Of a DNA stretch of 64,000 nucleotides, positions 5,293 to 57,804 are shown in pieces. Both the position numbers and the translations under genes were made by a program. Source of the DNA: Haliotis rufescens (taxonomy: Eukaryota). The notes below the pieces were generated by a model that was not told the origin of the DNA, made no database searches, and saw only the letters and a list, made by a program, of their open reading frames with translations. The stretch covers positions 6,014,001-6,078,000 of the forward strand of contig NW_025963924.1 of assembly GCF_023055435.1 (NCBI RefSeq), in the 5' to 3' direction. Each line of letters opens with the position of its first letter. The first letter of the stretch is position 1.

Positions 5293-8200
5293 TTAGGAAC
5301 ATTTGCAGGCACGCAGTTTTGCGTCAAAGATGGTACCGTTGCACACGTCAGTGTAGACCAGTCGCTGATTAACGCATACAACGTAGTGGCCAGACATTGG
5401 TCGATTTGCGTAGGGGTTAAGGCCGTCGGGGCGGTTCCTGCAGCTGGGGCTGTGGATGTAACAGGGAGGCCCACAGTCCTTTCCCCCAAGACACGCGTAC
5501 CGGGCATACTCGCCTGGAAACAGACATATTTCAGATCCGTTAATGTGTCATTTGAAACCCAACCCATAACACCAACATCGTAAACTAGGCGGCAAAAGAA
5601 AGTATAGGTCGAGTTCGAGGATCGATAGAAAAATTAACAAGAAGAGGTTTTGTTGTGAATTCTAATATACTACACACAAAAATTATTGGAACACCGAAAT
5701 ATACTGTTATAAAAAAGGAACATTTAATGACATGTGTTCGTATCATTACAATTGTGCATTAGCAGATTATCAAGCTTCAAAACAAAAACATTTACAGGTA
5801 ACTGTCATTGAAAAGCACACACGAACAATTCGAATAAGAAATTGGGGGTAAAAAATGGAAATCACAATGTCAATAGCGAGTGTGTCCTCCACGTTGATTG
5901 ATGCATTCGGTGCATCTTCGCCTCATGGATCTTGCAAGGGTGCGAAGGGTAGCCTGTGGAATCGCCTGCCATTCCATTTGGAGCCACTGAACCAGGGCCT
6001 GAAAAGCTGGTGCAACTCAAAGATTGTCCCTGACACGTCGTCCCAGAACATCCCAAAGATGCTCAATTGGAGCCAAATCCGGTGACTATGCTGGCCACTG
6101 CATCACAGTCACATTGTTCTGTTGCATGAAGTCTCTAACGACTCTAGCCCTATGTGGTCTGGCATTGTCATTTTGCAGGATTGCTCCTGGACCAATGTTG
6201 TTCAACTGTGGTAGGACAAGAGGGCGCAAAATCTCGTCACGATACCTCACTCCATTCAAATTGTTTTGAACAAGATAGAGAGGTGTTCGGTGATGCAAAC
6301 TGAAGCCTCCCCATACCATCACAGAGCCACCGCAAAACTGTTTCTTTCTCGTACAGTGGCATCCTCATAACGTTCGCCAGGACGTCTCATAACCATTACC
6401 CTTCCATCATTATGCTCAAGACAGAAACGGGACTCGTCATGTGAAGAGAACTCTGGACCATTGTTGATTATCCCATCTCAAATGTGCCCTGGCCCAGGCA
6501 AGTCTTGCAGCTCGGTGATGAGGACGAAGATGAGGAGGTACAGCTGGACGACGTGACCTTAAATGAGCAGCTCTGAGGCGGTTCCTGATGGTCGATACGC
6601 TTACGTTGGTGTGTGTTGCTTGTCGGAGTTGCAGTCTCAAAGCACTGGCTGTTGTGAACCGGTTCCGTAGGCTTGCAGCACAACGTATCGGTCATCTGCC
6701 CTAGATGTTACTCTGGGTCTACCAGAACGCGGTCTGTCCTGCACTCTCCCTGTTGTCTGGAACCGTTCCCTCAGTCTGTGAATGACAGACAGTGACACTT
6801 GAAGATGACAGGCAACATTCCTTATGGATGCATCATCTTGTAGTCACGCTATGGCCCTACTCCTGTCGTGAATGCTTAACGGTCTTCGCTGGGGCATGTT
6901 TAAGGAAATGTGTAACTTCACAGTGTCTGAAGCTTCTTAATAAAGAAAAGTTGCCACCAACTGCATGGGAATTCTGACTTTCACGTGCACTAGGTTGTTG
7001 TGTTTTGGCGTTTGAATCTGACATGGCGAGGGAGTCCTTCTGCACCCAAGCTTTTTCCTGTTTTAACATTTAATCAATTTGACCAAATTCTTTAAAAAAT
7101 TAAGCACTTGCAAAAATGCATGACTCAACACGTCATTTAAAGTGCCCTCAGTGCACACAAAAAGTTGCATTTACTGAAGTTCATAAATGATCAAGCCACG
7201 TTAAGTTTTATACATGGCTATGAAATTTAGGGGTGTTCCCATTTTTTTTGTGTGTAGTATATAATCTAGGGAGGGTTACAAATGATTGATCAACTATACA
7301 GTTTGAATGAAATTGTGCAATCACAGGTAATGTAAGCTCAAGGTAAACAATTGTGGGGTAAGAAATTTCATTTTCAAAAGTTGTCTGAAATGTCACCCAA
7401 AAATTGGCAGACACACTAAAAGTTCATTGTCGACACAGTTGCCTTCAATAGCGTGTATGACGTCCAGCCGCCTCAATGCATGCTGTAATACGCCGCCTCA
7501 TCGATGACGTCAGTCTTCTGATGACGTGGACTGGAATCCGTTGCCACTCGTCTCTCAGGGCCTGCTGCAATTCTTGTCTGTTGACGGGAGGCTGATGGCG
7601 CGCTCTAATCTGTCTGTCAAGATGGTCCCACAGATGTTCAATAGGATTCATATCGGGTGAGGGGGCAGGCCAGGGCAAAACGTCAACGTTCTGCTGGTTT
7701 ACTGCCCAGGTCAAAACGTCAACGTTCTGCTGGTTTAGAAAGTTCGGAGTCAGTCGTGCAGTATGGGGCCTGGCATTGTCATGTTGAAACAATGTCCCCT
7801 GCTGTTGGTTTTGTAACAATGGAAGCACAACTGGCTGCGACACTTGGTCTCTGTAATGCACAGCGTTCGGGTTTCCCTGCATAATCACCAAAACAGTCTT
7901 CCGATCTCCACAATACCGCCCCACACCGAATGGATGGACCTCTCGAAAACACGCCGGAGCCAAACGTTCCCCTCTGCGTCGATAAACTCGTTGTCTGGCG
8001 ACATTTCGAAACACGTTAAACCGACTTTTATCAGTAAACAGCACTCGACGCCAATTTCTCGCTTGCCAGCGTCAAACCTGCCTCGCCCATCGCAGTCTCA
8101 GGCGTCGATGTTGAGCAGTCAGTACCACTCCTCGGAAAGGACGATACGCTCGGATTCCAGCAGCACGAAGTCGTCGTAGTACTGTATTTTGGCTTATCGG

Positions 8201-11200
8201 ATGCCCCAACACTGTTGCTGCCGTCGCCGTTACGAATCTGTTTCGCAGGTGAATCAGCCGTATCTGACCGTCTTCCAGTGGGGGGCGGTCGGGTAGCCTA
8301 GTGGTTAAAGCGTTCGCTCGTCACGCTGAAGACCCGGGTTCGATTCCCGACATGGGTACAATGTGTGAAGCCCATTTCTGGTGTCCCCCGCCGTGATATT
8401 GCTGGAATATTGCTAAAAGCGGCTCAAAACCATACTCACTCATTCACTCTTCCAGTGGTGTTGTCACTCGGGTCGTCCGGTTCTAGGCCTGTCCTGTGTC
8501 CTCCCTGTCTGCCTGTACCGTTGACTCAGCCTGGCTACTGTCAATGGTGTACAACCAAACCTTCTAGCAATTTGGACCTATGTTGCCCCCATTTCGGCCA
8601 TACCGATGGCTCTCTCTCTCTGCTCCTGTGACAGTCGTGGCATTTCCTTTTTGTGCTTTCATCACGTGTGGTTATACCCTGCAGACGAACGCATATACAG
8701 CTAACATGCACGTGCAGTTTATGCCACAGGCGGGAAACCTTTTTAACCATTTTTTTGTCACCGCACGAGCGCTGTCAAAGGTGCCTCGTTCGGGTGAGGC
8801 CTTTTTTTGGTACCTGTTCCTAGGCAGTCATATTCCCAATACCCACTTTCCACTAGTAATCGCTGTTTTTAGGAAAATTACAAATTGCCAACCTTTACTT
8901 TCTTTTGCCGCTTAGTTTATATATGACCCTCTGAATATTCAAAACAGCGTTCCGATCGGTTTAAAATCGCAAACTTAGCGAATCAATCGTATATATAACA
9001 GTCACCTAATTTGATTTGATTTGATTATATCAACCATATATTAGCATGGCAGACATGTCCTTAATAATGATACTGAAATGTACACAAAAAAGTGTTTAAA
9101 TACTATTTGTTCACAGTGTCCATGAAAAAAAAAGATTCTGTTGTAAAAAGCCCATTTAGGCAAGGAAAAGACAAAACGACAGATGCGATTCTTAACGGGT
9201 GGACATTGATCATGACCTGTGGCTTGCTTCGTTGGTTGATATAGCGATCAGTGTATTTGATAGAAACTTGGCAAATCTGTCAGTCACATATTGAAGGGGT
9301 GCCTTTTGATATTTGGGGATTTTTCGAATTTTTATTTTTTTTAAATCTTTATGAAAAGAAGTTGGACAAAGACTCCATTGGGGATGGGGTTCGTTTCCGG
9401 GCAGAATTATTCGAAAACCATTCAGTATATTTGATCGAAACTTGAAAGATATATCAGATATATATGCTGAAGTGGTGCCTTTTGCTATTTTGTAATTTTA
9501 AAAATTTGTATTTTTGCCAAATTTAGGAATGTTTCAAAATTTAATTTTTCCGTGTATCCATGGACACAAGTAAGACTTTGCTGAAATGGAGGTTTCCATG
9601 GCAAGAAGTTTGACTTTGACTACATCTTTAAAAACTAATGGTATTCTTCCTTGAAACTATGCACACATATGACCAGTTTGTCATCAAGTGCCTTTTGCTA
9701 TTTGTTGGAATATAATTTTTTTTCATTTCCCTGGCAACAACTTTGACAAGCATAGTCGCCGTTCACGGCAGTATTTTCAAAATTCCTAAATAGCAAAAGG
9801 CACCAGTTTAGTATATGCCTGGTAGACATACCAAGTTTTGTAAGAGGTATTTAACAGTTTTTGAGTTACGCTCCAGAAATTAACACCACCCTTATAGAAC
9901 TTGTTGCCATGGAAACGTAAAAAATAAAAAAATCTAAACTTCCTAAATAGCAATACTCACCAGTTCAGCATGAGTCTGATTGATATGCAAAGTTTCGTAG
10001 CGAAATATTTAACGGTTTCTGAGTTATGAACCGGAAACTAGTTAGGGACGCACGCACACACGCACGGACGAGACCTAGTGGCGTGTACCATGCTTAATGT
10101 TATTCCCTCGCTTCCATGATCTAAGGGGCATAACTCTCATGCCTCATTACACCAAGCATACCGCTAGAATACACATCGCATTGCGTTATACTCATGTGCT
10201 CACATGTGAACACTACACCTGGGTACTTACACTTCCCCAGGGGCTCTGTTCTACTGCCACACGTGACCATGCTGTAGTGCTCACATCTCTGTGTATCAGG
10301 GTTGTACAGCTCCGGGAAGGGACATTCCTGGCGGTTCTTCTCCCAGGGTCTGCCATGTATAGTCATGGCAGGTGCGCTACAGTTGTAGTACTGGGCACAC
10401 TCAGTGAGGTGGGGAATCAGCGTCTCCGTCGTTGTCTTGCAAATGGGGTTGACGTCGACGTCGCTTTTGGGTGCAATCAAAGCTGACGCTGGAATCAGTG
10501 TGAAGTTACAGGTTTATTACTTGTTTGCGAGTGAGGACTCTTCATCCCTTGTTACTAGTGACGCCAAACACTCTTCACCCACCTCTATCCCCCTCTCTCT
10601 CTCCCTCACCGACCCTTTCTCCACCCTAACCTTTTACCCCTTGGGAACAACGTTCTGAATCTACCCGATCCCCACACTAACCTCTCTTACACTGCACATC
10701 ACATCCACCTATTCTCTCACATCCACCGACCCGTGAAGATTCCGGGGTAGAATAGGTCTTCAGCAACCCATGCTTGCCACAAAGGTGGCTATGCTTGTCG
10801 TAAAAGGCGACTAACAGGATCGGGTGGTCAGGCTCGCTGACTTGGTTGATGCATGTCATTGATCCCAATTGCGTGGATCGATGCTCATGATATTAATCAC
10901 TGGATTGTCTTGTCCAGACTCGATTATTTACAGACCGCCGTCATATAGCTGGAATATTGCTGAGTGCGGCGTTAAACAACAAACCAACCAATCAGTCAAT
11001 CTCACCTCCACCGACCAACTCTCCTCACCAAATCCATCTCTCAACCTACCCTTTCGTATTTCCGCCGGGAAGGGGTAGCCCGGTGATTAAAGCATTCGCT
11101 CTTCACACTGAAGGCCCGGGTTCTAGTCCCCCGCCCTGATATTACTGGAATATTACTGAAGGCGATGTGTAATCACACTCAGTCAGTCACTCACTCACTC

Positions 11201-11358
11201 ACTCACTTACCTACCTCCGCAGACTAACGATCCTCAATATGTCCTTTACCTCCACCCAAGTACAACACAGCATCATTAAAAAGACAAGCCTGCTCACATG
11301 ATTCCAGGGCGATCAGCAACACCATCAGCAAGCACAACACGCGACACTCACACATCAT
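5293..11358 (-). CDS. Gene A: secreted tandem chitin-binding-domain (CBM14/peritrophin-A, Pif/BMSP-like module) protein, 179 aa; join(11358-11298, 10488-10231, 5513-5293)
   Basis: Exon 1 MMCECRVLCLLMVLLIALES (hydrophobic signal-like) ends at T|GTGAGC. Exon 2 starts after TTCCAG and encodes C-x13-C-x5-C-x18-C-x12-C-x7-C, ending T|GTAAGT. Exon 3 starts after TTTCCAG: (C)EYARYACLGGKDCGPPCYIHSPSCRNRPDGLNPYANRPMSGHYVVCVNQRLVYTDVCNGTIFDAKLRACKCS*. 61+258+221 nt is in frame. ATTAAA at 5255-5250. Intron 2 is expanded by nested Tc1 elements. Confidence 0.85.
5668..7259 (-). mobile_element. Second Tc1-like transposon nested inside the first
   Basis: TIRs TACTACACACAAAAA..GGAACACC at both ends with TA duplication. 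Fragmented transposase (VWGGF, LQNDNARPH, WPA) ~5870-6900. Confidence 0.9.
8281..8447 (+). mobile_element. tRNA-derived SINE (family B) inside the Tc1 transposase gene
   Basis: Full-length, TSD TCTTCCAGTGG. Other copies at 17695-17870, 18106-18270, 30524-30700; degenerate at 11070-11205, 23980-24112, 51668-51800. Confidence 0.9.
9140..10075. mobile_element. Non-autonomous Helitron/Helentron-like (HINE-type) element with internal sub-repeats in both orientations
   Basis: Repeated ~170-nt units containing CCATGGCAAC / AAAAGGCACC and a GGAC-type microsatellite; homologous to 22280-22950. Confidence 0.45.
10728..10998 (+). mobile_element. SINE family A, full length, intron 1 of gene A (duplicate 23637-23908)
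   Basis: TSD CTCAC(A/C)TCCACCGAC; empty site in gene F at ~51612. Confidence 0.9.
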
Positions 11359-12117
11359 GGGGCTGTTGATGAGATCCGAACCGTCTACAAGAAAGCTAAT
11401 GCATAAACATGTTGGAGCTGATCAGTAAACGAAATTTCGGGTGTTGTATGTTAAACAGGTTGGTGTAACTTAAAGAGCGATCCGGATATTTTGATATAAG
11501 AAATATTGATATTTTGAATGACATGATAATGACTGTTTGGAAAGTGTTTTAAAAGTACAAGTTTGGATATGACTCCAATCACTTCCTGTTTCCATAATGT
11601 CCAAATGTCCCAGTATGTGAGTCAGCTACTTCAAATTCGGCAGCACCTGTCTATGGTCTTGCTTGTGTAGAGTCCTACAGATAAAGGTCAGCCATATAGA
11701 ATGTGTATTCCTTGTAGACCTGAAGTTAAAACGGTGAAAGCAAACGTATTTATTAAATATAATTATACTGGTATGTTTTATCTAACTAATATTCCACTAA
11801 TAGTTAGATTAAAATAGGTATCTCACGATAACTCCAAACTACAAAAGTACAGCTTTAATACGGCTAAAAGTGACGGAAATGTTTCTTCGGTATTGGCTCG
11901 TCACCTCAAGTTGGCTTTGTTGACTATAAATAGAACACAAACGAGTTTCGTATATATTTAAGGATCCGGATTCAGTGTGTGCCCAGTTATGTTTGTTGGT
12001 ATTATGGGCAGGAAAATAATCAACAGTGTCCCTCTCACTTTTGTGTTCAGTAAAAATAATGAAGAAATAATTTATTATCTTTATGCAGCATTATACTTAA
12101 AATGAATGTAAGCTTAC

Positions 12118-12198
12118 CTTCACAGCGCTAGAACTGTTCACGGGCAGGTGCTTGTTGTAGTTACGCTTCAGGCGTCTTAAGTGCAGCACACGCTGTCC
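12118..12198 (-). other. Putative 5' UTR exon/promoter-proximal block of gene A (homologues: C 25023-25103, E 43277-43364, F 52913-52993; shortened in B ~16899-16940, D ~30008-30050, G ~59551-59592)
   Basis: A strong donor AAG|GTAAG lies upstream of exon 1 in all seven copies. Exon 1 has its own acceptor 5' of the ATG (TTCTTGTAG in A/C/F/G), implying an upstream exon. Confidence 0.55.
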
Positions 12199-12559
12199 CT
12201 GTAACAGACAGGCGTTATCAGTGTGGAATATGGAATGACCGTTGCGCATTAAAGTCGCTATTCTTCAGTTGACGTGAAGCGTCATTTGCCTACCTCTTCA
12301 CTATAGGATTTAAATGTCCATGTATATTTAGATATGGGAAATGCACAAGTGGTTATCTGAGCAGATATGCTTTTTTATTCATTAACTGTTCGCGTTTTGT
12401 GAAGCGCCTTTTTGTACAGACACGCAAGGATACACACAGGCACGAACGCACGAAAGCTTCTTAAGTCGAGAGTCGTATATGTGGATGGAACGCGTTAAGG
12501 TGTTGATCCAGGTCTCATGAAGTGTGCATACGTTGTTGTTGTCAAGGTATCACTGACAT

Positions 12560-13950
12560 AAATGTCGAATGCAATTCCCTGTTTTGACTTGTTCCAAATG
12601 TTCCTGTGTTTTTTCAGGTGAACAATTTACCTTTACCTGTATTTGTCGTGGGTGCCACTGGTAGGGCGGGATAACACTCACCTGGCATCATCACTATTTT
12701 TGTCACTGATGGGTCAAATTTGGAAATGTCCTCCACATGTCTACCATACAACTTTGCTTTGAAAGCTTTGCTGAGGTCTTGTATGTTGTAACATTGATTA
12801 AACCACTCATGAGAAAGAATGGCATGACGCTCCTTGAAATATTCACAGAAAGAACATGCTCGAATGTACCTCAAAAGTACTGAAATGTAAACAGTGAAGG
12901 CTGACTATTGGAAAGTTCAAGCCATCCCTCTTGTCATACAGTCTTGTGGCGAGTTTTTTTGTCACCCTGATCTATATGTAGTATAAAACACGTCGGAGTG
13001 TTTGGGGAGTTTCAAAACCGGAATCCTAGGGATAAAACCGAGCGGCGTCGGCCCCGAGGTTTTATCCCAAGGTTGAGGGTTTTAAATCTCATAAAAACCC
13101 GATGGTAAGTGTTTTATCCATCTTGTCATCCCTCTTGTCATAAAGTATTGTGGATGGTGTTTTGTCAAACTGAATCTCTATGCGTTGATCTAAAGATGAA
13201 AAAGATTAGGCAGTATCACTTGTCTCCTTTTATTTCTAGCTCAGGTGGGTACATCTGTGGAAGGGAAATGACTATTTCACCATTATTGAACGATTTTAGA
13301 CCACCAATATACCTGATGCTTAAGTTAAACTTCTTGGCCAAATTCCCTTTTCCCAATCTGAGCAGACCTTCCTCTTCATGTGCATAAAGAAACAGATGAG
13401 CAAGATGGGGAGCACAATTGGTGCCCATGGGGATGCCTACCAAATTTTACATTGTGTGATATAGATGTTATCAATGACTTCATATGTTGTTTTCTCAGTT
13501 TACGTCAGATAACATTTTCTTTTATATTTCACAAATTCTCCCGAACCTCTAACGATAGAGATATAACTATATCAATAGCCACCGCGTATAGTAACAAATG
13601 CCCTTTGAATCAAAGAATAAAGGTTTTCCCTTAGTTTGTCGTGTGAATTACAAGGACAGCTGTTGACAATGGATCGGGCGATCCTGAGGCTTTGACGATT
13701 CAGTATACCCGTGGAAGATGCCACTGACGTTGTTAATTTAACCCAGACCATGTACATGTTAGGGAAATAGTCCAATGATTTACTAATTTCATCTCTGATT
13801 TTTTTGGAACAAGCAAAATGATGCGGAAGAGGCAGGAGTACTGCTGTGCGGCTTCAGACAACAGACACTTATTATTGATGCGGATGCTACCTGTGGAGCA
13901 GAATATGATTCCCCTTCTCGCGAACACCCGGTGTCATCACTTATTTTCTG
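12560..13950 (-). mobile_element. Decayed Penelope-like retroelement RT (duplicates ~25465-26846, ~53365-54765)
   Basis: GIPMGTNCAPHLADLFLY and RYIRACS...FKERH...YGRH motifs. The 3' segment (12560-12700) is inverted relative to the RT body. Confidence 0.8.
12975..13120. mobile_element. Palindromic MITE-like insert within the PLE (duplicates ~25878-26022, ~53785-53928)
   Basis: Nested inverted repeats ATAAAACAC/GTGTTTTAT and GGGATAAAACC/GGTTTTATCCC. Confidence 0.55.
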
Positions 13951-14205
13951 GCCCGTGAAGATCCGGGGAAGAATAGGTCTTCAGCAACCTATGCTGGCTG
14001 CAAAAGGCGACTATGCTTGTCGTAAGAGGCGACTAACGGGATCGGGCTCGCTGACTTGGTTGATGCATGTCGTCGATCCCAATTGCGTGGATCGATGCTC
14101 ATGATGTCAATCACTGGATTGTCTGGTCGAGACTCGATTATTTACAGACCGCCGTCATATAGCTGGAATATTGCTGAGTGCAGCGTCAAACAACAAACAA
14201 ACAAA
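13950..14205 (+). mobile_element. SINE family A (duplicates 26847-27102, 54764-55015)
   Basis: Consensus match with (AAAC)n tail. Confidence 0.85.
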
Positions 14206-15084: not shown

Positions 15085-15362
15085 GACCCGTGAAGATTCC
15101 GGGGTAGAATAGGTCTTCAGCAACCAGTGCTTGCCCTAAAAGGCGACTATGCTTTTCGTAAGATGCGACTAACGGGATCGGGTGGTCAGGCTCGCTGACT
15201 TGGTTGAAGCATGTCATCGATCCCAATTGCGTGGATCGATGTTTATGGTATTAATCACTGGATTGTCTGGTCCAGACTCGATTACGTACAGGCCGCCGTT
15301 ATATAGCTGGAATATTGCTGAGTGCGGCGTTAAACAACAAACAAACAAACAAACAAACAAAC
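15085..15362 (+). mobile_element. SINE family A, full length, intron 2 of gene B (duplicate 27980-28248)
   Basis: TSD C(C/T)ATCGAAACGA; empty site in gene G at ~57403. Confidence 0.9.
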
Positions 15363-15689
15363 TATCGAAACGAAGAGGAAGCCTGGGCACTCACATTTTC
15401 CCAGGGGCTCCATTCTGTTACCGCACTGGACCATGCTGTAGTGCTCACATCTCTGTGTTCCAGGGTTGTACAACTGCGGGTAGGGACATTCCTGTAAGTT
15501 CTTCCCCAAGATGATGCGGTTAAATTTCATGGCTGGGGCGCTACAATTGTAGTACTGGGCACACTTTGTGGGGTGGGGTATTAGCGTCTCCGTCGTCGTG
15601 TTGCAAATGGGGTTCACGTCGCTTGTCGGTGCAATCAAGCTGATACTGGAATCAGTGTGAAGTGGCAGGTTGAAACTAGTTACCACAAA

Positions 15690-17604: not shown

Positions 17605-18095
17605 AATGTTATCAATGAAGACGACCAGCGTTTCACATATTGTTTTCCCACGGAACCTCAGATGTCATTTGCTTTCATTTTTCAGAAATTGTCAGGGGCG
17701 GTCGGGTAGCCTAGTGGTTAAAGCGTTCGCACGTCACGCCGAGGACCCGGGTTCGATTCCCGACATGGGTACAATGTGTGAAGCCCATTTCTGGTGTCCC
17801 CCGCCGTGATATTGCTGGAATATTGCTAAAAGCGGCGTAAAACTATACTCACTCACTCACTCACTCACTCAGAAAGTGTCCTGAACCTCTGAAGATAGAT
17901 ATGTAACTATATCTTTAGTCTCCACATTTAGTAACAAATACCCCACGGATCAAGAAGAGAAGTCTTTCCTTAAATTTGTAATGTCGGACAGTAGTGTACA
18001 AAGTTGATAAATCAAATGTTTTGACAGAACTGAACCTTGTACTTCACTGAGTTTTCAGTGTTTAAAAAACCCACATGGTATTGATTCCACTTGTC
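17605..18095 (-). mobile_element. Penelope-like RT fragment with SINE insertion (related pieces 31230-31910 and 39540-40545)
   Basis: ICETL.F.IDNI-type RT segment, homologous to the + strand copy at 39540-39750 (KTICEMLDFLIDIIYVKF). Confidence 0.55.
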
Positions 18096-18443
18096 TAATA
18101 CTTCCTGGGGCGGTCAGGTAGCCTAGTGGTTAAAGCGTTTGCTCGTCACACCGAAGACCCGGGTTCGATTCCCGACATGGGCACACTGTGTGAAGTCCAT
18201 ATCTGGTGTCCCCCGCCTTGATATTGCTGGAATATTGCTAAAAGCGGCGTAAAACCATACTCACTCACTAATACTTTCTGTGAATATGAAGAATCTCCGC
18301 CCTTGATTGTATTAATGGTTGCGGTTAATCACTAAGGCAGGGATTTGGTTGTACATTTGCTGGACCCAGCAATATATCTCTCTGTTTACGCATTTCTATT
18401 TGAGCTGTTGAATCCATTACTCAAGAGGAATGGATATGTCTTC

Positions 18444-20267: not shown

Positions 20268-23200
20268 TTACGAACACCTGCAGGCGCGCAATTTGGCGTC
20301 AAAAATAGGTGCTCCCGTTCCGTAATCGTGGCACACGCCAGTGTAGACCAGTCGCTGATTAACGCACACCACGTAGTTGGGAGTGTTGAGGCGCCATTCG
20401 TAGACGTTGAGGCCGTCGGAGAGGTTCCTGCAGGTGGGATTGTGAACGTGGCATGGTATCCCACAGTACTTTCCCCCAGGACATGCGTGCTGTTCATATT
20501 CGCCTGGAAACAAACATATTTCAGATCCCGGTAAATTTGTAATTTGAATCCGAAAGCACACCAACAACATCGTATGACCCTCTTAATATTCAAATGACAA
20601 ATTTTGCAGGATCAATTTTATTTAACAGTCCTCTAATTTGAAAACAGTAGTTTGGATGATTGAACTGTGTAACATTGTTTCTGTTGAGATTGGGTAGGGG
20701 ATCAACGCATTGTATTTGGACAGTGATTAGTTGTCAGGAATGTTGTACTATTTAATGTAAACAGTTGTGAGGAAGTTACTATATTCAGATGCTGGTGTGC
20801 TGTGTAAACTGTAGTGAACTGTGATGGAGTGTTACAGAAACATGACTGCATTGTAGAATATTCTATGTTGTGATGACACTGGAAATTTCCAGTAGCTGGT
20901 TAGACCGTACATAAGGGGGCAAGAGCGTGCCTAATTAATGGCCTTGATGTCCACGGTTCTGAAAGAAAATGAATAATGTACAATTGGAACTAAAGACTCA
21001 TGAAAGAACTTGGTATAAGTGACATACGACATTATACCACGTACTAGAATAAGGCCAGTATGTTAAAACCTAAAGACATTTCCATTCCTCTTTTGTATTC
21101 CAAAGCTACATAAACATCCCTACAAAGAGAGATCAAGTGGATGGACACAGGGAACAAATCTGGAACACAACGCAATGCCCCCACACGCATTGTCCATCAC
21201 TACCTAAACAAAAAAGGTGTAAATTTGCCTCGTTGCCTGAACACCTGTAAATGATTAAAGGTTAAAGCTCAATCACCGAAACAACAACAACAACAACAGT
21301 TCCATGGCCAGTACAGGACTTTTCGTTTGTTTGTTTGTTTGTTTGTTGAGCCCAGGAATTCCAGCCTAGTTCGGTAAGGGTGGAAACTGGACTTTTAAAG
21401 TCAGTTAACCCTCTTGCCTCGGGAAGATGTTTACAGCAAGCATTGGTTATTGTTCTTTTGGCCACATATACAAATACACTGTCTGTCTGTCTCTCCATGG
21501 CCAGCATGATCACCGGATCCGAAACAGGTACGTGTCAACAGAATTTAGCAACATGCTTTTGTAAAGGAATTACGCCATAAGGCGGTTGACAACATAAGAA
21601 AGGTGACGTGGTAGAGTGCATTGATGGAGATGCGGAAACACGCATTTATCACCCAGAAACAACATTAGCAGGAACAGCTTCAGTTTTACAACAAGCGTCT
21701 ATTTCCATGATAGGATGAAACCGTCTTTTGGAGCCTATGTGTCTTCAGAACACATGTCCATGTGATTCATTCTGTCGTATTGATATATTTTAATATCAGA
21801 TGGATGACGTAATTGATTAAATCCATGTTGACATCAATATTCGTCTTTGTTTACTTTTACTGACATTCAAACTCAGTGAGAACGTTTTCATCAGGTTCGT
21901 TAAATCAATGTGAAGCAAGATTTGATCCTCCATGAACCGACGTTACATGCTTTGATGTAGGTTATATTGTATACCATTCATAGTTTTACGATTGATATAT
22001 TTTGAATAATAATCTGTTATTACCTATATATGATCACATCAAACGTGTACTCTTTCATTCAGTTGAAATGTACGCTAGCCTGGTGTATGTGGGATAAAAA
22101 CCTATTGCATTCCTGTGAAATAAATGCTTTCAGACATTTGCGGCAAATTTGCCAGTTACTGTAGTTTATTAATGTTAAAGGTATATATGTCCATGCTCTT
22201 TGTTTCTATTGAGAAGAGGGAAGCCAGGTGTAATATTAATGTTTTAAGCAGCTGATGGCCTGTGTCACACTGGATGATGAAACGTGTATAGTCGACGAAG
22301 TCATCTATATCCCCCGCCAATTTAACGCGTTATGGTCCCAAACCAGAGGTAACTGACCCAACATTTCTTAGCCTGTGTCAAAATATCTGCAATGGAAATC
22401 GTAAAATAAACACTTCTAAAACTCCTTAATATCAAATGGCACCAGTTCGGTATGTGCTTTACATATAGACATGCAATGTTTGGCAAGGAAATATTTAACA
22501 ATTTATTTGTTATACTCCATAAGTGAACCCACCCTATATTAAAACTTAAATCCAACTTGTTGCCATGGAAACGTAAAAAAAATAAAAAATTCTAAAAGTG
22601 CTAAATATCAAAAGGAACCAGTTCAGTTTGTGCCTTGCAGACAGGCAAAGTTTTGTAAGAAAGTATTTAACAGATTATGAGTTACGCTCCGGAAACGAAC
22701 ACCACCCTATAGAACCTAAGTCCAACTTGTTGCCATGGAAACGTAAAAAATAAACATTTCTAAAATTCCTAAAGAGCAAAAGGCACCAGTTCAGCATGAG
22801 TCTGATAGATATGCAAAGTTTCGTAGAGAAATCTTTAATGGTTTCTCAGTTATGCTCCGGAAACTATTTCGGGACGCACGCACACACGCACGGACGGACG
22901 GACGGAACCCATTTCTATATCCCCCACCAACTTCGTTGGGCGGGGGATAATAAACGATTGAAGACCTAGTAGCGTGTACCTTGCTTAATGTTATTCACTC
23001 GCTTCCATGACCTAAGGGGCATAACTCTCATGCCTCATTACACCATGCATACCGCTAAAATACATATCGCACTGTGTTATACTCATGTGCTAACATGTGA
23101 ACACTACACCTGGGTACTTACACTTCCCCAGGGGCTCTGTTCTGTTCCCACACGTGACTTTACAGTAGTGCTCACATCTCTGTGTTTCAGGGTTGTACAG

Positions 23201-24263
23201 CTCCGGGAAGGGACATTCCTGTAGGTTTTGTCCTAAAAAGCCGTAACGATGTATTATCATGCCCGGTGCGCTACAGTTGTAGTACTGGGCACACTTAGTA
23301 GGGTGGGGGATCAGTGTCTCCATCGTTGTCTTGCAAATGGGGTTCACGTCGACGTCGCTTGTGGGTGCAATCAAAGCTGATGCTGGAATCAGTGTGAAGT
23401 GACAGGTTTAATACTTGTTTGCGAGTGAGGACTCTTAGGTCCACTTTATCCCTTGTTACTAGTGACGCCAAACACTCTTCACCCACCTCTACCCCTATCT
23501 CCCTCTCTCTCTCCCTCACCGACCCTATCTCAACCCTAACCTTTTACCTCTGGGGAACAACGTTCTCAATCTATCCGATCCCCACTCTAACCTCTCTTAC
23601 ACTGCACATCACATCCACCTATTCTCTCACCTCCAGCGACCCGTGATGATTCCGGGGTAGAATAGGTCTTCAGCAACCAATGCTTGCCGCAAAGGTGGCT
23701 ATGCTTGTCGTAAAAGGCGACTAACAGGATCGGGTGGTCAGGCTCGCTGACTTGGTTGATGCATGTCATTGATCCCAATTGCGTGGATCGATGCTCATGA
23801 TATTAATCACTGGATTGTCTTGTCTAGACTCGATTATTTACAGACCGCCGTCATATAGCTGGAATATTGCTGAGTGCGGCGTTAAACAACAAACCAACCA
23901 ATCAGTCAATCTCACCTCCACCGACCAACTCTCCTCACCAAATCCATCTCTCAACCTACCCTTTCGTATTTCCGCCGGGAAGGGGTAGCCCGGTGATTAA
24001 AGCATTCGCTCTTCACACTGAAGGCCCGGGTTCTAGTACCCGCCCTGATATTACTGGAATATTACTGAAGGCGATGTGTAATCACACTCAGTCAGTCACT
24101 CACTCACTCACTTACCTACCTCCGCAGACTAACGATCCTCAATATTTCCTTTACCTCCACCCAAGTACAACACAGCATCATTAAAAAGAGAAGCCTGCTC
24201 ACATGATTCCAGGGCGATCAGCAACACCATCAGCAAGCACAACACGCGACACTCACACATCAT
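20268..24263 (-). CDS. Gene C: secreted tandem chitin-binding-domain protein, 185 aa; join(24263-24203, 23382-23122, 20503-20268)
   Basis: Same exon architecture and GT-AG sites; 61+261+236 nt, open frame. Exon 2 ...CAQYYNCSAPGMIIHRYGFLGQNLQECPFPELYNPETQRCEHYCKVTCGNRTEPLGK. Exon 3 (C)EYEQHACPGGKYCGIPC...LRACRCS*. ATTAAA ~40 nt after the stop. Confidence 0.88.
22280..22950 (+). mobile_element. Helentron/HINE-like non-autonomous element
   Basis: Subterminal direct repeat CTATATCCCCC(G/A)CCAA, (GGAC)n tract, 3' hairpin ATCCCCC..CCAAC TTC GTTGG..GGGGGAT; collapsed form at ~50920-50992. Confidence 0.5.
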
Positions 24264-27200
24264 GGGGCTGTTGATGAGATCCGAACCGTCTACAAGAAAG
24301 CTAATGCATAAACATGTTGGAGCTGATCAGTAAACGAAATTTCGGGTGTTGTATGTTAAACAGGTTGGTGTAACTTAAAGAGCGATCCGGATATTTTGAT
24401 ATAAGAAATATTGATATTTTGAATGACATGATAATGACTGTTTGGAAAGTGTTTTAAAAGTACAAGTTTGGATATGACTCCAATCACTTCCTGTTTCCAT
24501 AATGTCCAAATGTCCCAGTTTGTGAGTCAGCTACTTCAAATTCGGCAGCACCTGTCTATGGTCTTGCTTGTGTAGACTCCTACAGATAAAGGTCAGCCAT
24601 ATAGAATGTGTATGCCTTGTAGACCTGAAGTTAAAACGGTGAATACAAACGTATTTATTAAATATAATTATACTGGTATGTTTTATCTAACTAATATTCC
24701 ACTAATAGTTAGATTAAAATAGGTATCTCACGATAACTCCAAACTACAAAAGTACAGCTTTAATACGGCTAAAAGTGACGGAAATGTTTCTTCGGTATTG
24801 GCTCGTCACCTCAAGTTGGCTTTGTTGACTATAAATAGAACACAAACGAGTTTCGTATATATTTAAGGATCCGGATTCAGTGTGTGCCCAGTTATGTTTG
24901 TTGGTATTATGGGCAGGAAAATAATCAACAGTGTCCCTCTCACTTTTGTGTTCAGTAAAAATAATGAAGAAATAATTTATTATCTTTATGCAGCATTATA
25001 CTTAAAATGAATGTAAGCTTACCTTCACAGCGCTAGAACTGTTCACGGGCAGGTGCTTGTTGTAGTTACGCTTCAGGCGTCTTAAGTGCAGCGCACGCTG
25101 TCCCTGTAACAGACAGGCGTTATCAGTGTGGAATATGGAATGACCGTTGCGCATTAAAGTCGCTATTCTTCAGCTGACGTGAAGCGTCATTTGCCTACCT
25201 CTTCACTATAGGATTTAAATGTCCATGTATATTTAGATATGGGAAATGCACAAGTGGTTATCTGAGCAGATATGCTTTTTTATTCATTAACTGTTCGCGT
25301 TTTGTGAAGCGCCTTTTGTACAGACACGCAAGGATACACACAGGCACGAACGCACGAAAGCTTCTTAAGTCGAGAGCCGTATATGTGGATGGAACGCGTT
25401 AAGGTGTTGATCCAGGTCTCATGAAGTGTGCATACGTTGTTGTTGTCAAGGTATCACTGACATAAATGTCGAATGCAATTCCCTGTTTTGACTTGTTCCA
25501 AATGTTCCTGTGTTTTTTCAGGTGAACAATTTACCTTTACCTGTATTTGTCGTGGGTGCCACTGGAAGGGCGGGATAACACTCACCTGGCATCATCACTA
25601 TTTTTGTCACTGATGGGTCAAATTTGGAAATGTCCTCCTCATGTCTACCATACAACTTTGCTTTGAAAGCTTTGCTGAGGTCTTGTATGTTGTAACATTG
25701 ATTAAACCACTCATGAGAAAGAATGGCATGACGCTCTTTGAAATATTCACAGAAAGAACATGCCCGAATGTACCTCAAAAGTACTGAAATGTAAACAGTG
25801 AAGGCTGACTATTGGAAAGTTCAAGCCATCCCTCTTGTCATACAGCCTTGTGGAGAGTTTTTTTGTCACCCTGATCTATATGTAGTATAAAACACGTCAG
25901 AGTGTTTGGGGAGTTTCAAAACCGGAATCCAAGGGATAAAAACCGAGTAGCGTCGGCCCCGAGGTTTTATCCCAAGGTTGAGGGTTTTAAATCTCATAAA
26001 AACCTGATGGTAAGTGTTTTATCCCTCTTGACATCCCTCTTGTCATAAAGTATTGTGGATGGTGTTTTGTCAAACTGAATCTCTATGCGTTGATCTAAAG
26101 ATGAAAAAGATTAGGCAGTATCACTTGTCTGCTTTTATTTCTAGCTCAGGTGGGTACATCTGTGGAAGGGAAATGACTATTTCACCATTATTGATCGATT
26201 TTAGACCACTAATATACCTGATGCTTAAGTTCAACTTCTTGGCCAAATTCCCTTTTCCCAATCTGAGCAGACCTTCCTCTTCATGTGCATAGAGAAACAG
26301 ATCAGCAAGATGGGGAGCACAATTGGTGCCCATGGGGATGCCTACCAAATTTTACATAGATGTTATCAATGACTTCATATGTTGTTTCACTCAGTGTACG
26401 TCAGATAACATTTTCTTTTATATTCCATAAATTCTCCCGAACCTCTAACGATAGAGATATAACTATATCAATAGCCACCGCGTATAGTAACAAATGCCCT
26501 TTGAATCAAAGAATAAAAGTTTTCCCTTAGTTTGTCGTGTGAATTACAAGGACAGCTGTTGACAATGGATCGGGCGATCCTGAGGCTTTGACGATTCAGT
26601 ATACCCGTGGAAGATGCCACTGACGTTGTTAATTTAACCCAGACCATGTACATGTTAGGGAAATAGTCCAATGATTTACTAATTTCATCTCTGATTTTTT
26701 TGGAACAAGCAAAATGATGCGGAAGAGGCAGGAGTACTGCTGTGCGGCTTCAGACAACAGACACTTATAATTGATGCGGATGCTACCTGTGGAGCAGAAT
26801 ATGATTCCCCTTCTCGGGAACGCCCGGTGTAATCACTTATTTTCTGGCCCGTGAAGATCCGGGGAAGAATAGGTCTTCAGCAACCTATGCTGGCTGCAAA
26901 AGGCGACTATGCTTGTCGTAAGAGGCGACTAACGGGATCGGGCTCGCTGACTTGGTTGATGCATGTCGTCGATCCCAATTGCGTGGATCGATGCTCATGA
27001 TGTCAATCACTGGATTGTCTGGTCGAGACTCGATTATTTACAGACCGCCGTCATATAGCTGGAATATTGCTGAGTGCAGCGTTAAACAACAAACAAACAA
27101 ACACTTATTTTCTGTGATTCATTCTCACATCGTCACCGCTATTTTGTCTTTCACACCCAATGGAATCTGTTTCGTCATATAATCGAGACTGATTACTCTC

Positions 27201-27424: not shown

Positions 27425-29119
27425 TTATGAACACCTGCAGGCACGCAAGTTAACGTCAAAGACAGGTGTCCCCGTTCCGTTATCGTGGCACTCGCCAGTG
27501 TAGACCAGTCGCTGATTAACACATACAACGTAGTAAGAAGAGCCGGGGCGATTTTCGTAGGCGTTGAGGCCGTCAGGAAGGAACCTGCAGGTTGGGTTGT
27601 TGACGAAACACGGTGGTCCACAGTTGACTGACCCAAGACACGCGTACCGGGGATACTCGCCTGGAAACAGACATACCACAGATCCACCTAAAGTTGTCAT
27701 TTGAAACCGAACACTGACGAACAACAAGTGCATGTCCGTTTGATTTCAAAGGGAAAAAATAGCGGGATCAAGTTTATAAAACAGTCCTCTAATTTGATTT
27801 GACTCAAATGTGTTCACTTTTTCCAATAGAAATGAATCAACGCATCTTTGTGTGTATGGATAAAATATGGCAACTACTGTGAAGCGCGTTCAGCCATTGG
27901 CCAGTAATTAAGGATTGCTGTAGTTAATAACTGTTAAAAGTTATATATATATTCATGCTCTTGGTTTCCATCGAAACGAGACCCGTGAAGATTCCGGGGT
28001 AGAATAGGTCTTCAGCAACCAGTGCTTGCCCTAAAAGGCGACTATGCTTTTCGTAAGATGCGACTAACGGGATCGGGTGGTCAGGCTCGCTGACTTGGTT
28101 GAAGCATGTCATCGATCCCAATTGCGTGGATCGATGTTTATGGTATTAATCACTGGATTGTCTGGTCCAGACTCGATTACGTACAGGCCGCCGTTATATA
28201 GCTGGAATATTGCTGAGTGCGCGTTAAACAACAAACATACAAACAAACTATCGAAACGAAGAGGAAGCCTGGGCACTCACATTTTCCCAGGGGCTCCATT
28301 CTGTTACCGCACTGGACCATGCTGTAGTGCTCACATCTCTGTGTTCCAGGGTTGTACAGCTGCGGGTAGGGACATTCCTGTAGGTTTTTCCCCAAGATGA
28401 TGCGTTAAATTTCATGGCTGGGGCGCTGCAATTGTAGTACTGGGCACACTTTGTGGGGTGGGGTATTAGCGTCTTCGTCGTCGTGTTGCAAATGGGGTTC
28501 ACGTCGCTTGTCGGTGCAATCAATGCTGATACTGGAATCAGTGTGAAGTGGCAGGTTGAAACTAGTTACCACAAAAAAACATAGCACAACACACGCACAG
28601 ACATACAAGAACACAACACACATATACTATACACACACACGGAGGAAACACACAACATACCCACACAACACATACATCACGCACAACACACGCACAGACA
28701 TACAAGAACACAACACACATATACTGTACACACACACGGAGGAAACACACAACATACCCACACAACACATACATCACGCACAACACACGCACAGACATAC
28801 AAGAACACAACACACATATACTATACACACACACGGAGGAAACACACAACATACCCACACAACACATACATCACGCACAACACACGCACAGACATACAAG
28901 AACACAAAACACATATACTATACACACACACGGAGGAAACACACAACATACACACACACGGAGGCAACACACATTATACCCACACAACACATACATCACG
29001 CACAACACAGCACAACACAACACAACACAACGTCTTTAAAACAGAGAATCCTGCTCACATGATTCCAGGGCGACCAGCAGCACCATCAGGAAGTACAACA
29101 CTCGACACTCACACATCAT
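27425..29119 (-). pseudogene. Gene D: B-type paralogue with 1-nt deletion in mid exon 2; exons 29119-29059, 28531-28281, 27660-27425
   Basis: Exon 2 is 251 nt; + strand GATGCGTTAAAT at ~28400 versus GATGCGGTTAAAT in B and G. The ORF track splits here into two frames. Exons 1 and 3 are open. The GG>G loss could be a read error. Confidence 0.7.
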
Positions 29120-30963
29120 GGGGCTGCAGAAGAGATCCAATCAGTTGCCCCCCTGGATTTTTTTTTATAGAAAACAGTTTTATTTGAATCAACTTGGGGA
29201 CAAGTGATACTTGTGCAAATATTTGCCCTCCCTGTAAAAAAATGTTAGCTGCGGCCTAATATGCGATCCTCTGGTTTGGATAAAGCGAAATTTCACTTGT
29301 ATGTCAAACAGATTGGTGTTATTTAGAGCTCGATCTGTATATTTTAATATGATAACGAATTCGTATTGTGTAGAACATGTAAATGGCCGTTTGGAATGTG
29401 TTTTAAAAGTACAGGTTTGATTTGGTTGGTTGGTTTGTTGTTTAACGCCGCACTCAGCAATATTCCAGCTATATGACGACGGTCTGTAAATAATCGAGTC
29501 TGGACCAGACATTCCAGTAATTAATATCATGAGCATCGACCCCAACCAAGTCAGCGAGCCTGACCACCCGATCCCGTTTGTCGCCTTTTACGACAAGCAT
29601 AGTCGCCTTTTACGGCAAGCATGGGTTGCTGAAGACTTATTTTATCCCTGAATCTTCACGGGTCTACAAGTTTGAATATGACTCCAATCACTTCCTGTAT
29701 CCATAATGATCATAATGTCCTTATGTCTCAGTGTGTAAGTCAGATACTTCAAATTCGGCCACACTTGGTTATCTTGGGTTAAGAAGAAAACAGCTGTCTC
29801 CCGTCTTGTCTGTATAGCTCTTCAGACAATGGTCAGCGTAAGTTAAATTCCACTTCCATTTATTATTTTGTGAATACGTGTAGAACTGAAGCTAAAACTG
29901 TAAATATTTATTGAATATACTTGTACTGGCATGCTTTATCTAACTTAAATTCCACTTCCATTTATTATTTTTATGCAGCCTGATATATAACATAAATCAC
30001 AGCTTACCTTATCAACGCTATAACCGATATAGTGCAGGTGCTTGTGGTGTCTTGACGATAGGATTAAATGTCATTGTATATTAGATAAGAAAAATGCGCA
30101 TATTCTTATCTGAACAACAGATGGGTTTTTTATGTGCAAGGATATATTAGGTCTCCCTGTGCTGTAAAGTCTATTGTACATTCATGGACAGACACAGATA
30201 CGCACAGACGCACTCACGGACTCGGTTTTGCCTGCACAAGGCACACAGTCATCACAGATCATGAGTTTCATTTGTTCTAAGTGATTCACGATCATTTCAA
30301 TGAAACACTGTAACCTATATATTTGGGAATGAAGTTATTTTTTTTATTTGTTGTTTATTGATACAATCAGCCAATAATCCAGCCACATGGCAAGGAGCAT
30401 GTAAATGACTGAGTGATTTATATTTTGAGCAACGTTTTACTCTGTCTGGGTAGGGTGACACGCAATCAACGGAGTCAAAGTGCCTGACCACCAGATCAAG
30501 TTAGGAGCTTCTTACTACCAGCAGGGGCGGTCGGGTAGCCTGGTGATTAAAGCGTTCGTTCATCACGCCGAAGACCCGGGTTCGATTCCCGACATGGGTA
30601 CATTGTGTGAAGCCCATTTCTGGTGTCCCCCGCCGTATTATTGCTGGAATATTGCTAAAAGCGGCGTAAAACCATACTCACTCACTCACTCACTCACTTA
30701 CTAACAGCATAGAGTAGTTTATGTAATAGTTTGTTTTTTATTGAAATTGAACAGGGCCTGTATCATTTATTTTTTATATCATTATCATGCTTAGTGGCAC
30801 TATCAGTATCGTTAACAGCTGCTATAATTGACAGCCGTTGTCTACGTCTGGTTCACGTAAAGGTGTTGATGCAGATGCCGTCAAGTGCGTCTACGTTGTG
30901 CTTATCAACATCTTTATGAAGACGAGTAAAATGTCTGAGTATCTGCCCAGTCAATAGATAAAA

Positions 30964-51100: not shown

Positions 51101-52157
51101 CATATCGCACTGTATTATTCTCATGTGCTAACATGTGAACACGACACCTGGGTACTGGCCAAGAATACTTACACCTCCCCAGAGGCTCTCTTCTGCTGCC
51201 ACACGTGACCATGCTGTAGTGCTCACATCTCTGTGTATCAGGGTTGTACAGCTCCGGGAAGGGACATTCCTGTTGGTTCTGTCCTAAGGTGTAACCCTGC
51301 ATTTTCAGGCCCGGTGCGCTACAGTTGTAGTACTGGGCACACTCAGTTGGGTGGGGGATCAGTGTCTCCGTCGTTGTCTTACAAATGGGGTTCACGTCGA
51401 CGTTGCTTGTGGGTGAAATCAAAGCTGATGCTGGAATCAGTGTGAAGTGACAGGTTAAATACTTGTTTGCGAGTGAAGACTCTTAGGTCCACTTTATCCC
51501 TTGTTACTAGTGACGCCAAACACTCTGCACCCACCTCTGGGGAACAACGTTCTTAATCTACCCCATCAACACTCTAACCTCTCTTACACTGCACATCACA
51601 TCCACCTATTCTCTCACCTCCACCGACCACCTCTCCTCACCAAATCCATCTCTCAACCTACCCTTTTGCAGGGGTAGCCCAGTAGTTAAAGCATTCGCTC
51701 TTCACACTGAAGGCCCGGGCTCGAGTCCCCCGCCCTGATATTACTGGAATATTACTGAAGGCGATGTGAAATCACAGTCAGTCATGATCAGTCACTCACT
51801 TACCTCCGCAGACTAGCGATCCTCAATATCTCCCTTACCTCCACCCAGCACAACACTGACGGTATACAAAACGAACAGTACAACATACACGCATGAAAAC
51901 AAAGCATACTACACACAACAAACACACAATGTAACACTCACATAAAACCAACATCACACAACAGAGAACACATAAAAACGGATCACAACACACCAGAACA
52001 CAACACACACACTATACACAAACATAACGAAAGACACACAGACATACATCACACACATAATATAACGCAACAAATTAAAAAGAGAAGCCTGCTCACATGA
52101 TTCCAGGGCGGCCAGCAGCACCATCAGCAAGCACAACACTCGACACTCACACATCAT
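48185..52157 (-). CDS. Gene F: secreted tandem chitin-binding-domain protein, 184 aa; join(52157-52097, 51430-51173, 48420-48185)
   Basis: Exon 1 MMCECRVLCLLMVLLAALES. Exon 2 is 258 nt. Exon 3 (C)EYEKGKCHEGMRCWIPCSVNYPTC...LRACRCS*. Canonical splice sites, open frame; poly(A) hexamer changed to AGTAAA. Confidence 0.88.
49585..50682 (-). mobile_element. 3'-truncated Tc1-like transposon in intron 2 of gene F
   Basis: MPRLSDNERLRAIGML, GRPRVT, VIFTDES, FQHDSA motifs; absent from the matching intron of gene C. Confidence 0.85.
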
Positions 52158-57378: not shown

Positions 57379-57804
57379 TATGTATATTCATGTTCTTGGC
57401 TTCTATCGAAACGAAGAGGAAGCCTGGGCACTCACATTTTCCCATGGCTCCATTCTGCTGCCTCACGTGACCATGCTGTAGTGCTCACATCTCTGTGTTC
57501 CAGGGTTGTACAGCTGCGGGTGGGGACATTCCTGTAGGTTCTTCCCCAAGATGATGCGGTTAAATTTCATGGCTGGGGCGCTACAATTGTAGTACTGGGC
57601 ACACTTTGTGGGGTGGGGTATTAGCGTCTCCGTCGTCGTGTTGCAAATGGGGTTCACGTCGCTTGTCGGTGCAATCAATGCTGATACTGGAATCAGTGTG
57701 AAGTGGCAGGTTGAAACTAGTTTGCAAGTGGGAAGTCAACTCCACCCCTCGTTACCGTGCCACCAAACACACTGCATCCTTCTCTCTCCTTGCTCACCTC
57801 TTAC

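Follow-up and report, generated by a model that had tools for sequence, protein, structure and literature searches.

What makes one loop of a small domain differ from gene copy to gene copy, while the cysteine framework that carries it hardly changes? The question is raised by a 64,000-nucleotide stretch of the Haliotis rufescens genome (RefSeq assembly GCF_023055435.1, contig NW_025963924.1, positions 6,014,001 to 6,078,000 of the forward strand), here called the window; positions below are counted from its first letter unless a contig is named. A preliminary description, made from the letters alone, had singled out the segment between the third and fourth cysteines (Cys3 and Cys4) of a CBM14 domain in what we call gene A. 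It described this segment as a hypervariable, length-variable loop on a constant disulphide scaffold, and proposed a specificity loop comparable to the complementarity-determining regions (CDRs) of immunoglobulins. The variability proves to be real; its causes are less simple.

The loop and its framework

Minus-strand translation of 10200-10498 is free of stops, contains NPICKTTTETLIPHLTECAQYYNCSAPAMTIHGRPWEKNRQECPFPELYNPDTQRCEHYSMVTCGSRTEPLGK and passes through the segment as CAQYYNC SAPAMTIHGRPWEKNRQE CPFPELYNPDTQRCEHYSMVTC. Around this translation gene A was modelled as follows.

11358..11298, minus strand: exon 1, with the ATG, the signal peptide MMCECRVLCLLMVLLIALES and a single base of the codon that follows; phase-1 donor T/GTGAGC
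10488..10231, minus strand: exon 2, 258 nt, phase 1-1, with the whole CBM_14 domain; acceptor ttccag/CG, donor T/GTAAGT
10381..10379, minus strand: Cys3 codon
10378..10325, minus strand: Cys3-Cys4 loop, 54 nt, 18 codons, SAPAMTIHGRPWEKNRQE
10369..10334, minus strand: variable core of the loop, about 12 codons, AMTIHGRPWEKN, alignment columns 24-36
10324..10322, minus strand: Cys4 codon
5513..5293, minus strand: exon 3, a second, degenerate peritrophin-A-type domain (..EYARYAC...KLRACKCS, then stop)

The range first given for the loop, 10325-10385, contains it but also takes in Cys3 and part of the preceding codon. Pfam CBM_14 (peritrophin-A; PF01607, gathering cut-off 22.1 bits) was matched by all five exon translations in a scan of gene A and four sister copies (28.6-36 bits), and by all four full proteins (29.3-39.9 bits). 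Cysteines in the family are spaced C-x13-C-x5-C-x(14-19)-C-x12-C-x7-C. The consensus for CBM14 is C-x(11-24)-C-x5-C-x(9-14)-C-x(12-16)-C-x(6-8)-C, with disulphides C1-C3, C2-C6 and C4-C5; the third gap of the family is therefore at or above the upper limit of 14, while the other gaps fit. Directly before the loop lies a predicted N-x-S glycosylation sequon (Asn-Cys3-Ser, 10379-10387), which is present in most copies; the E-type copies, with YYDC before the loop, are without it.

A tblastn search of the window with gene A exon 2 returned seven minus-strand copies, gene A among them. The loops of the others are:

15542..15489, minus strand: copy B, 54 nt, SAPAMKFNRIILGKNLQE; exon with a 1-nt deletion near its 5' end, probably a pseudogene
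23272..23216, minus strand: gene C, 57 nt, 19 codons, SAPGMIIHRYGFLGQNLQE
28427..28375, minus strand: copy D, 53 nt; frameshifted by a 1-nt deletion within the loop
40835..40791, minus strand: gene E, 45 nt, 15 codons, STPAMEDSWEQNLQE
51320..51267, minus strand: gene F, 54 nt, 18 codons, SAPGLKMQGYTLGQNQQE
57582..57529, minus strand: copy G, 54 nt, peptide as in B; exon with a TGA stop and a downstream 1-nt deletion, by its sequence a pseudogene

Among five distinct window copies, identity amounts to 369/430 in the scaffold and 49/60 at the loop edges, but to 38/124 in the loop core. The contrast is the same across the genome: for 14 distinct copies (91 pairs) the scaffold is 74.1% identical, the loop edges 74.7% and the core 21.4%, a difference far beyond chance that fully bears out the description of a hypervariable loop on a constant framework. 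When a 12-column window is moved along the alignment, identity reaches its minimum of 0.19 exactly on the core, lies between 0.37 and 0.64 in other positions that overlap the loop, and between 0.63 and 0.85 clear of it. The ends of the loop are conserved – its first three residues (mostly S-A-P) and its last three match the conservation of the scaffold – and the variable part comes to about 12 codons. Loop length within the family is 14, 15, 18 or 19 residues; in units of other proteins with the same cysteine pattern, mostly molluscan where named, it ranges from 7 to 28, the commonest spacing being 9. Inside the loop some pattern nevertheless persists: core position 2 is Met or Leu, and column 33 holds Trp, Leu or Met. 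The tip columns consist of Tyr, Arg and Ile (13% each), Lys (10%), and Gly and Phe (8% each), as compared to a scaffold with 10% Tyr, 2% Phe, 1% Gly and some 3% each of Arg, Lys and Ile.

All five loop peptides first listed (A, C, F, E, and one common to B and G) proved exact on re-translation, although the last comes from damaged copies only. Indeed, each of the four copies seen with a B-type loop is damaged, namely B, D and G (exons at 15369-15641, 28255-28541 and 57445-57696) and a copy elsewhere on the contig, L011. The lesions differ among B, D and G; L011, a duplicate of G, has at least the TGA stop in common with it. Lesions and single-base differences in B and D aside, all four have one and the same loop. 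The claim that indels come in multiples of three holds for the intact loops (45, 54 or 57 nt), but the pattern is one of survivorship, because copy D shows the alternative: a 1-nt loop deletion that breaks the gene. Three annotated H. rufescens proteins correspond to window copies. P0004 is identical to gene C in the exon-2 domain and the exon-3 translation, P0003 matches gene F in loop and exon 3, as well as the sister copy of F, which is nearly identical; the read-through product of the broken copy D is annotated as P0015.

The product of gene A is predicted to be a small secreted protein of about 180 residues, built from a signal-peptide exon, a CBM_14 exon and a second-domain exon, and its N-terminus is that of annotated Haliotis proteins. 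Gene A is transcribed, and spliced from exon 2 to exon 3 as modelled, because contigs of the public runs X1 (species label A) and X5 (species label B) contain the joint 5512/10230. On the minus strand the joint has GT..AG ends; it leaves out 5513/5514..10229/10230 and confirms the donor end of exon 2. Besides showing it, contigs of public runs cover the gene A intron too. Gene A itself was searched exon by exon, and full-length analyses used natural annotated proteins.

Disorder of the loop, which the preliminary description had named among the things that would count against its proposal, is not what the models give. AlphaFold2 predicts an ordered hairpin in both proteins modelled. For P0004 (the gene C product; alignment of 46 sequences) the mean predicted local distance difference test score (pLDDT) is 86.0, and 77 over residues 61-70, with bridges at 63 and 69. 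For P0001, the gene A counterpart in H. cracherodii, the corresponding values are 88.7 and 85, and the loop, identical to that of gene A, forms a two-stranded hairpin (63-64 and 67-68) with a turn at His65-Gly66. The strands assigned by DSSP to the P0004 model (44-46, 53-56 and 74-76, plus 81-84 and 89-92) reproduce the 3+2 layout of CBM14, whose fold pairs a three-stranded antiparallel sheet with a two-stranded one; in this model the loop corresponds to the A2-A3 hairpin, which is longer than in the canonical domain. A Foldseek search with the whole model placed EHEP first (8IN6, E 2.7e-4; 8IN3, E 4.6e-4), followed by Avr4, CHIT1 and tachycitin. Aligned by VIA-align, domain 1 scored Z 4.6-5.8 to tachycitin, Avr4 and EHEP (5.7-5.8 to the first domain of EHEP), moderate values for small domains, and domain 2, exon 3 of the gene C product, scored 5.6-5.8 against Der p 23 and CHIT1's chitin-binding domain. 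The exon 3 domain has variable patches of its own, in its N-terminal cysteine linker and at HDYGTGAP (P0004 residues 110-124 and 166-172); its own A2-A3 hairpin, VCVNQRLVY, is short and hardly varies.

For the crystal structure of CfAvr4 bound to (GlcNAc)6, the published contacts are Lys49, Cys50, Met51, Pro53, Tyr67, Gln69, Lys84 and Lys99-Tyr103 (PMC6128652). Judged by a HMMER alignment to PfAvr4, these contacts would map to scaffold positions of the abalone proteins, and none to the hairpin tip.

Selection, and divergence between copies and between species

In order to compare selection on the parts of the domain, Nei-Gojobori counts were made for six phylogenetically independent pairs chosen on the scaffold tree, and a maximum-likelihood (ML) codon model was fitted to 14 sequences. 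In the scaffold the proportions of synonymous and non-synonymous differences (pS and pN) are 0.289 and 0.077, a ratio of about 0.25; the ML estimate of the non-synonymous to synonymous rate ratio (dN/dS, omega) is 0.19, and a value of 1 is rejected (p = 1.6e-16). The loop edges behave alike (pS 0.497, pN 0.115, ratio about 0.2; omega 0.13, 1 rejected with p = 2.3e-6). For the core, pS is 0.312 and pN 0.384, a ratio of 1.2-1.3 (p = 0.76 against neutrality), and omega is 0.71, with 1 not rejected (p = 0.34). Non-synonymous and synonymous differences stand at 58:11 in the core and 48:44 in the scaffold (Fisher p = 2e-5).

The core thus differs clearly from the scaffold, but not from neutrality. 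Near-invariance of the framework, the second element of the preliminary description, is confirmed as purifying selection, with dN/dS of 0.19-0.25, and of 0.13-0.23 at the loop edges. Adaptive diversification of the loop is not: the description had itself set a dN/dS of about 1 against that proposal, and this is the value that the core has (0.71-1.3). As the simplest evolutionary test, dN/dS leaves adaptive and neutral change unseparated.

A neutral yardstick is offered by introns, although it was usable for the pair A-C only. Wider intron windows for C-F and A-F run into non-homologous insertions (34-38% differences), and for most copy pairs the flanking introns no longer align (K about 1), whereas the scaffold's synonymous divergence is no more than about 0.3. 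In A-C, the youngest pair, the core has 11 non-synonymous differences over 29.3 sites, as against 49/719 in the flanking introns (Fisher p = 4e-6). Core sites counted as synonymous are saturated too (6.0/6.7), and for this reason remodelling or exchange of sequence seems a better reading of the A-C core than selected point changes. Among the six independent pairs there are three whose non-synonymous divergence in the core is above the synonymous divergence of the scaffold: A/F (0.43 vs 0.15), E/L014 (0.53 vs 0.27) and B/L015 (0.51 vs 0.38).

Comparisons with the closest relatives give a different picture from comparisons among copies. H. cracherodii P0001 has exactly the loop of gene A, and P0005 that of copy L005; E differs from P0010 in one loop-edge residue, and C from P0002 in 3 of 13 core residues. 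Over seven such orthologue-like pairs, 13/76 core sites and 39/301 scaffold sites differ, a ratio of 1.3; over six pairs of gene copies the counts are 43/62 and 44/258, a ratio of 4.1. The share of differences that falls in the core is larger in copy pairs than in orthologue-like pairs (Fisher p = 0.007). Exon 3 lends independent support as orthologues only to A-P0001 (93%) and E-P0010 (96%). What the loops tell apart, then, is gene copies and not species. In the contigs covering the loop of gene A no hypervariability was seen either, with no difference in X1 (10271-10366) and one in X5 (10274-10400), contigs being a form of data that drops rare variants.

Exchange in the array and readings of the loop

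The 1.33-Gb genome holds 45 matches to the family, about 22 of them on one contig between 5.998 and 6.210 Mb – an array of some 210 kb. All 15 named relatives found by sequence are uncharacterised proteins of H. rufescens, H. cracherodii, H. rubra and H. asinina, and a literature search for six locus names of these proteins returned no match, supplements (for example of Haliotis shell proteomes) lying outside its scope. A profile built from 14 Haliotis proteins found 721 representatives at E<=0.001, many with the two-domain unit repeated; the ten that were looked up are all molluscan, and one cluster includes hichin, a nacre matrix protein discussed below. These data document a large, uncharacterised, abalone-specific expansion of hichin-like genes.

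Genes A and C match over 9780-14000 and 22590-26896, a stretch that spans exon 1, the intron after it, exon 2 and some 450 bp of intron 2; over 3.9 kb (10071-14000, exon 2 and its flanks) identity is 96.6%. Divergence is stepwise: about 1% over 10800-14000, then 4-10% over 9900-10800 when the loop is set aside, and 18% in the loop's own bin. Exon 3 tells another story, the gene A exon being 93% identical to P0001 and 78-79% to P0008 and P0009, but only 64% to the product of gene C. Since exon 3 belongs to another subtype, while exon 2 and its flanks match gene C, gene A is, by its sequence, a chimera from an exchange within intron 2. A second trace is found in the scaffold. Adjoining their identical loop, gene A and P0001 differ in a cluster of residues (CPFPELYNPD vs CPYPQLYNPE) that is typical of other copies, which suggests gene conversion. 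At sites informative for the quartet A, C, F and E the data fit a single tree, and C and F have derived states in common.

Another likeness concerns the loop itself. The 3' half of the gene A loop (10334-10369) matches E-type loop DNA (40791-40835) once an insertion of 10 nt and a deletion of 1 nt are admitted. The match would put a few residues in another frame, and could be a compensated frameshift, a micro-exchange or chance; its out-of-frame part is only about 10 bases long, and we do not claim a frameshift or chimeric origin for the gene A loop.

Three kinds of repeat accompany the genes. Over about 6.054-6.107 Mb of the contig (window 40000-64000 and onward) there is a higher-order repeat, in which the exons of E, F and G recur some 26 kb further on as L007, L002 and L011; E recurs again as L008, and the proteins across the repeat are nearly or fully identical. 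It could be a recent segmental duplication or an artefact of assembly. A very high-copy repeat lies at 8282-8449, and also at 787-938, 2780-2946, 17695-17862, 18107-18267 and 30524-30691, with a summed contig depth thousands of times that of its neighbours. Its head is tRNA-like (Rfam tRNA, 27.7 bits at 8287-8358, below the cut-off of 29), and it is probably a tRNA-derived short interspersed nuclear element (SINE). The third repeat, of about 265 bp, is found just upstream of gene A exon 2 (10728-10994) and in about 20 other places, 84-96% identical and in both orientations; it adjoins exon 2 of copies B and D, and overlaps the putative SINE at 15085-15185.

How, then, is the loop to be understood? 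The account that we put forward, and to which we would give an even chance, is that it forms the free hairpin tip of the first peritrophin-A domain in a hichin-related array, that the tips of the copies diverge almost neutrally, and that they possibly tune a secondary contact. Purifying selection holds the disulphide scaffold and the residues aligned with known CBM14 ligand contacts, whereas the 5-12 tip residues carry little structural load and accept point substitutions and whole-codon indels at a roughly neutral rate. Each gene copy has a tip of its own, which the matching gene of a close species keeps, and crossing-over in introns re-pairs exon 2 with different types of exon 3, gene A being an example. 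The tip may then give every copy a different surface patch beside a common binding face, and may tune a secondary contact – for example with a polyphenol, a polymer surface or a partner in the matrix – without specificity of the antibody kind. Several points weigh against this account. A dN/dS near 1 fits a functionless loop equally well, and the exposure of the tip, away from the conserved face, is read from the topology of the models. The orthologues were chosen partly with the loop in view, and some pairs have lineages in common; for A and E alone, core differences (0/21) are not significantly fewer than scaffold differences (7/86; Fisher p = 0.34). Moreover, few loop changes are expected between species in any case, because the closest species are only about 3% apart in their introns (as measured in contigs), so that neutrality predicts about one or two.

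A tolerant loop with no function at all, its unconstrained tip drifting neutrally and taking up whole-codon indels that keep the frame, is a possible though more doubtful explanation. It agrees with the core ratios on both methods, with a loop pLDDT (77-85) below that of the scaffold (94-98), with loop lengths of 14-19 in the family and 7-28 in units of other proteins, and with the death of copy D by a 1-nt loop deletion. Under pure drift, however, the core-to-scaffold ratio should not depend on whether species or copies are compared, and the ratios seen are 1.3 between species and 4.1 between copies, subject to the caveats on orthologues just given; nor does drift account for the residues kept at core position 2 and column 33, or for a tip predicted to be an ordered hairpin. 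The opposite explanation is that of the preliminary description, in which positive diversifying selection on the tip has built a germline repertoire of binding loops comparable to CDRs. The loop is indeed predicted to be ordered and, by topology, exposed; it is specific to each copy and sits on a constrained scaffold. The A-C core has its excess of non-synonymous change over the intron rate, three of six independent pairs have theirs over scaffold synonymous divergence, the tip is richer than the scaffold in Arg, Lys, Ile, Phe and Gly, and the family is a large, fast-changing tandem array. The CDR-like label is nevertheless borne out only in part: pooled dN/dS is not above 1, the synonymous sites of the A-C core are saturated as well, and loops are conserved between close species and without variation in the contigs. 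We regard selection of this kind as unlikely.

Less likely again is an explanation by concerted evolution, in which conversion homogenises the scaffold and the nearby introns while old loops escape, so that the contrast between the two overstates the rate of the loop. The steps in A-C divergence, the chimeric build of gene A, the residue cluster that separates gene A from P0001 beside an identical loop, and flanking introns that are mostly unalignable when scaffold synonymous divergence is about 0.3 are all consistent with it. Single pairs had likewise hinted, through higher synonymous divergence in the loop, at a loop older than its scaffold. We rejected that idea on the pooled pairs, where core and scaffold are equal (0.312 vs 0.289); because synonymous divergence is the same in both, the loops are not much older than the homogenised scaffold, and the quartet sites do not contradict a single tree. 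The least probable of the readings considered, and in our view a long shot, combines exchange with repertoire: exon 2 tips and exon 3 patches would have diversified separately and been re-paired by intron crossing-over, with the varied phlorotannins of kelps, on which abalone feed, rather than chitin as possible target. This target is proposed because EHEP is the best whole-model structural match; a search of titles and abstract starts for a phlorotannin-binding or digestive-binding protein of abalone found no such protein. If true, separately diversified modules would give combinatorial surfaces.

Returning to a near-neutral hairpin tip that may tune a secondary contact, the models place the main difference among copies in one predicted ordered hairpin. 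If tips do tune binding, the array would show germline diversification of a chitin-binding-type scaffold in a mollusc, and would provide natural loop variants on one fold for the study of binding to shell matrix, algal polyphenols or microbes.

Comparison with known systems

The nearest characterised relative is hichin of Sinohyriopsis (Hyriopsis) cumingii, the original paper on which is said to be that of Jin et al. 2019. According to a later source, hichin is a known nacre matrix protein with a chitin-binding domain (bioRxiv 10.1101/2022.09.07.507049). It is of like size (180 residues, as compared to 179-185) and of like layout, the signal peptide being followed by a CBM14 domain whose Cys3-Cys4 loop is long and then by another cysteine-rich domain; BLASTP against P0004 gives 32% identity over 165 of 185 residues (E 4e-26). 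From this likeness in sequence, domain order and size, the abalone family comprises homologues of hichin. The difference is one of number and of knowledge: hichin is a single characterised bivalve nacre protein, whereas the abalone genes, known from sequence, stand in tandem in at least 22 copies and have loops specific to the copy.

With the canonical CBM14 domains (tachycitin, CHIT1, Avr4, DgCBP-3) the family has in common the Pfam match, the six cysteines and the 3+2 layout, with Z of 4.5-5.8. The closest solved sequence is that of a chitin-binding squid beak protein, 7BWE (E 0.0014), in which the HMMER alignment opens a 9-residue gap at the loop. Two positions that matter for ligand binding differ. 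The position of the key stacking Trp of PfAvr4 is Arg in the abalone proteins by HMMER alignment, and the Tyr/Trp position that is crucial in CHIT1 and CfAvr4 would, on our residue mapping, be His. Because of these two substitutions chitin binding should not be assumed for the family, and the name "chitin-binding" would describe a fold. That the fold can serve other ends is indicated by two sources, in which EHEP and Der p 23 have it without binding chitin, EHEP-type spacing is CX15CX5CX9CX12CX5-9C, and EHEP uses the fold to bind algal polyphenols (PMC10619976; PMC5271319).

EHEP, a sea-hare protein, is likewise small, secreted and of gastropod origin, and consists entirely of peritrophin-A domains. 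It has three of them, arranged in a triangle, with a Cys3-Cys4 spacing of 9, where the abalone proteins have two, and its ligand pocket lies between domains, not on the A2-A3 tip. No sequence match to EHEP was found at E<=1; the likeness is at the level of the fold, and the whole-model TM-score is low (0.25). A literature search on positive selection and loops in CBM14 returned, by titles and abstract starts, nothing on loop diversification in animals.

There remains the comparison with which the locus was introduced. Like immunoglobulin V-gene CDRs and conotoxins, the abalone genes combine a constant cysteine framework and tandem duplication with variation, including variation in length, in one loop. 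Families of the CDR and conotoxin type have dN/dS above 1 in their variable parts, often together with population or somatic diversity. The abalone loop is unlike them on both counts: it evolves with a dN/dS close to 1, and it changes little from one close species to the next.

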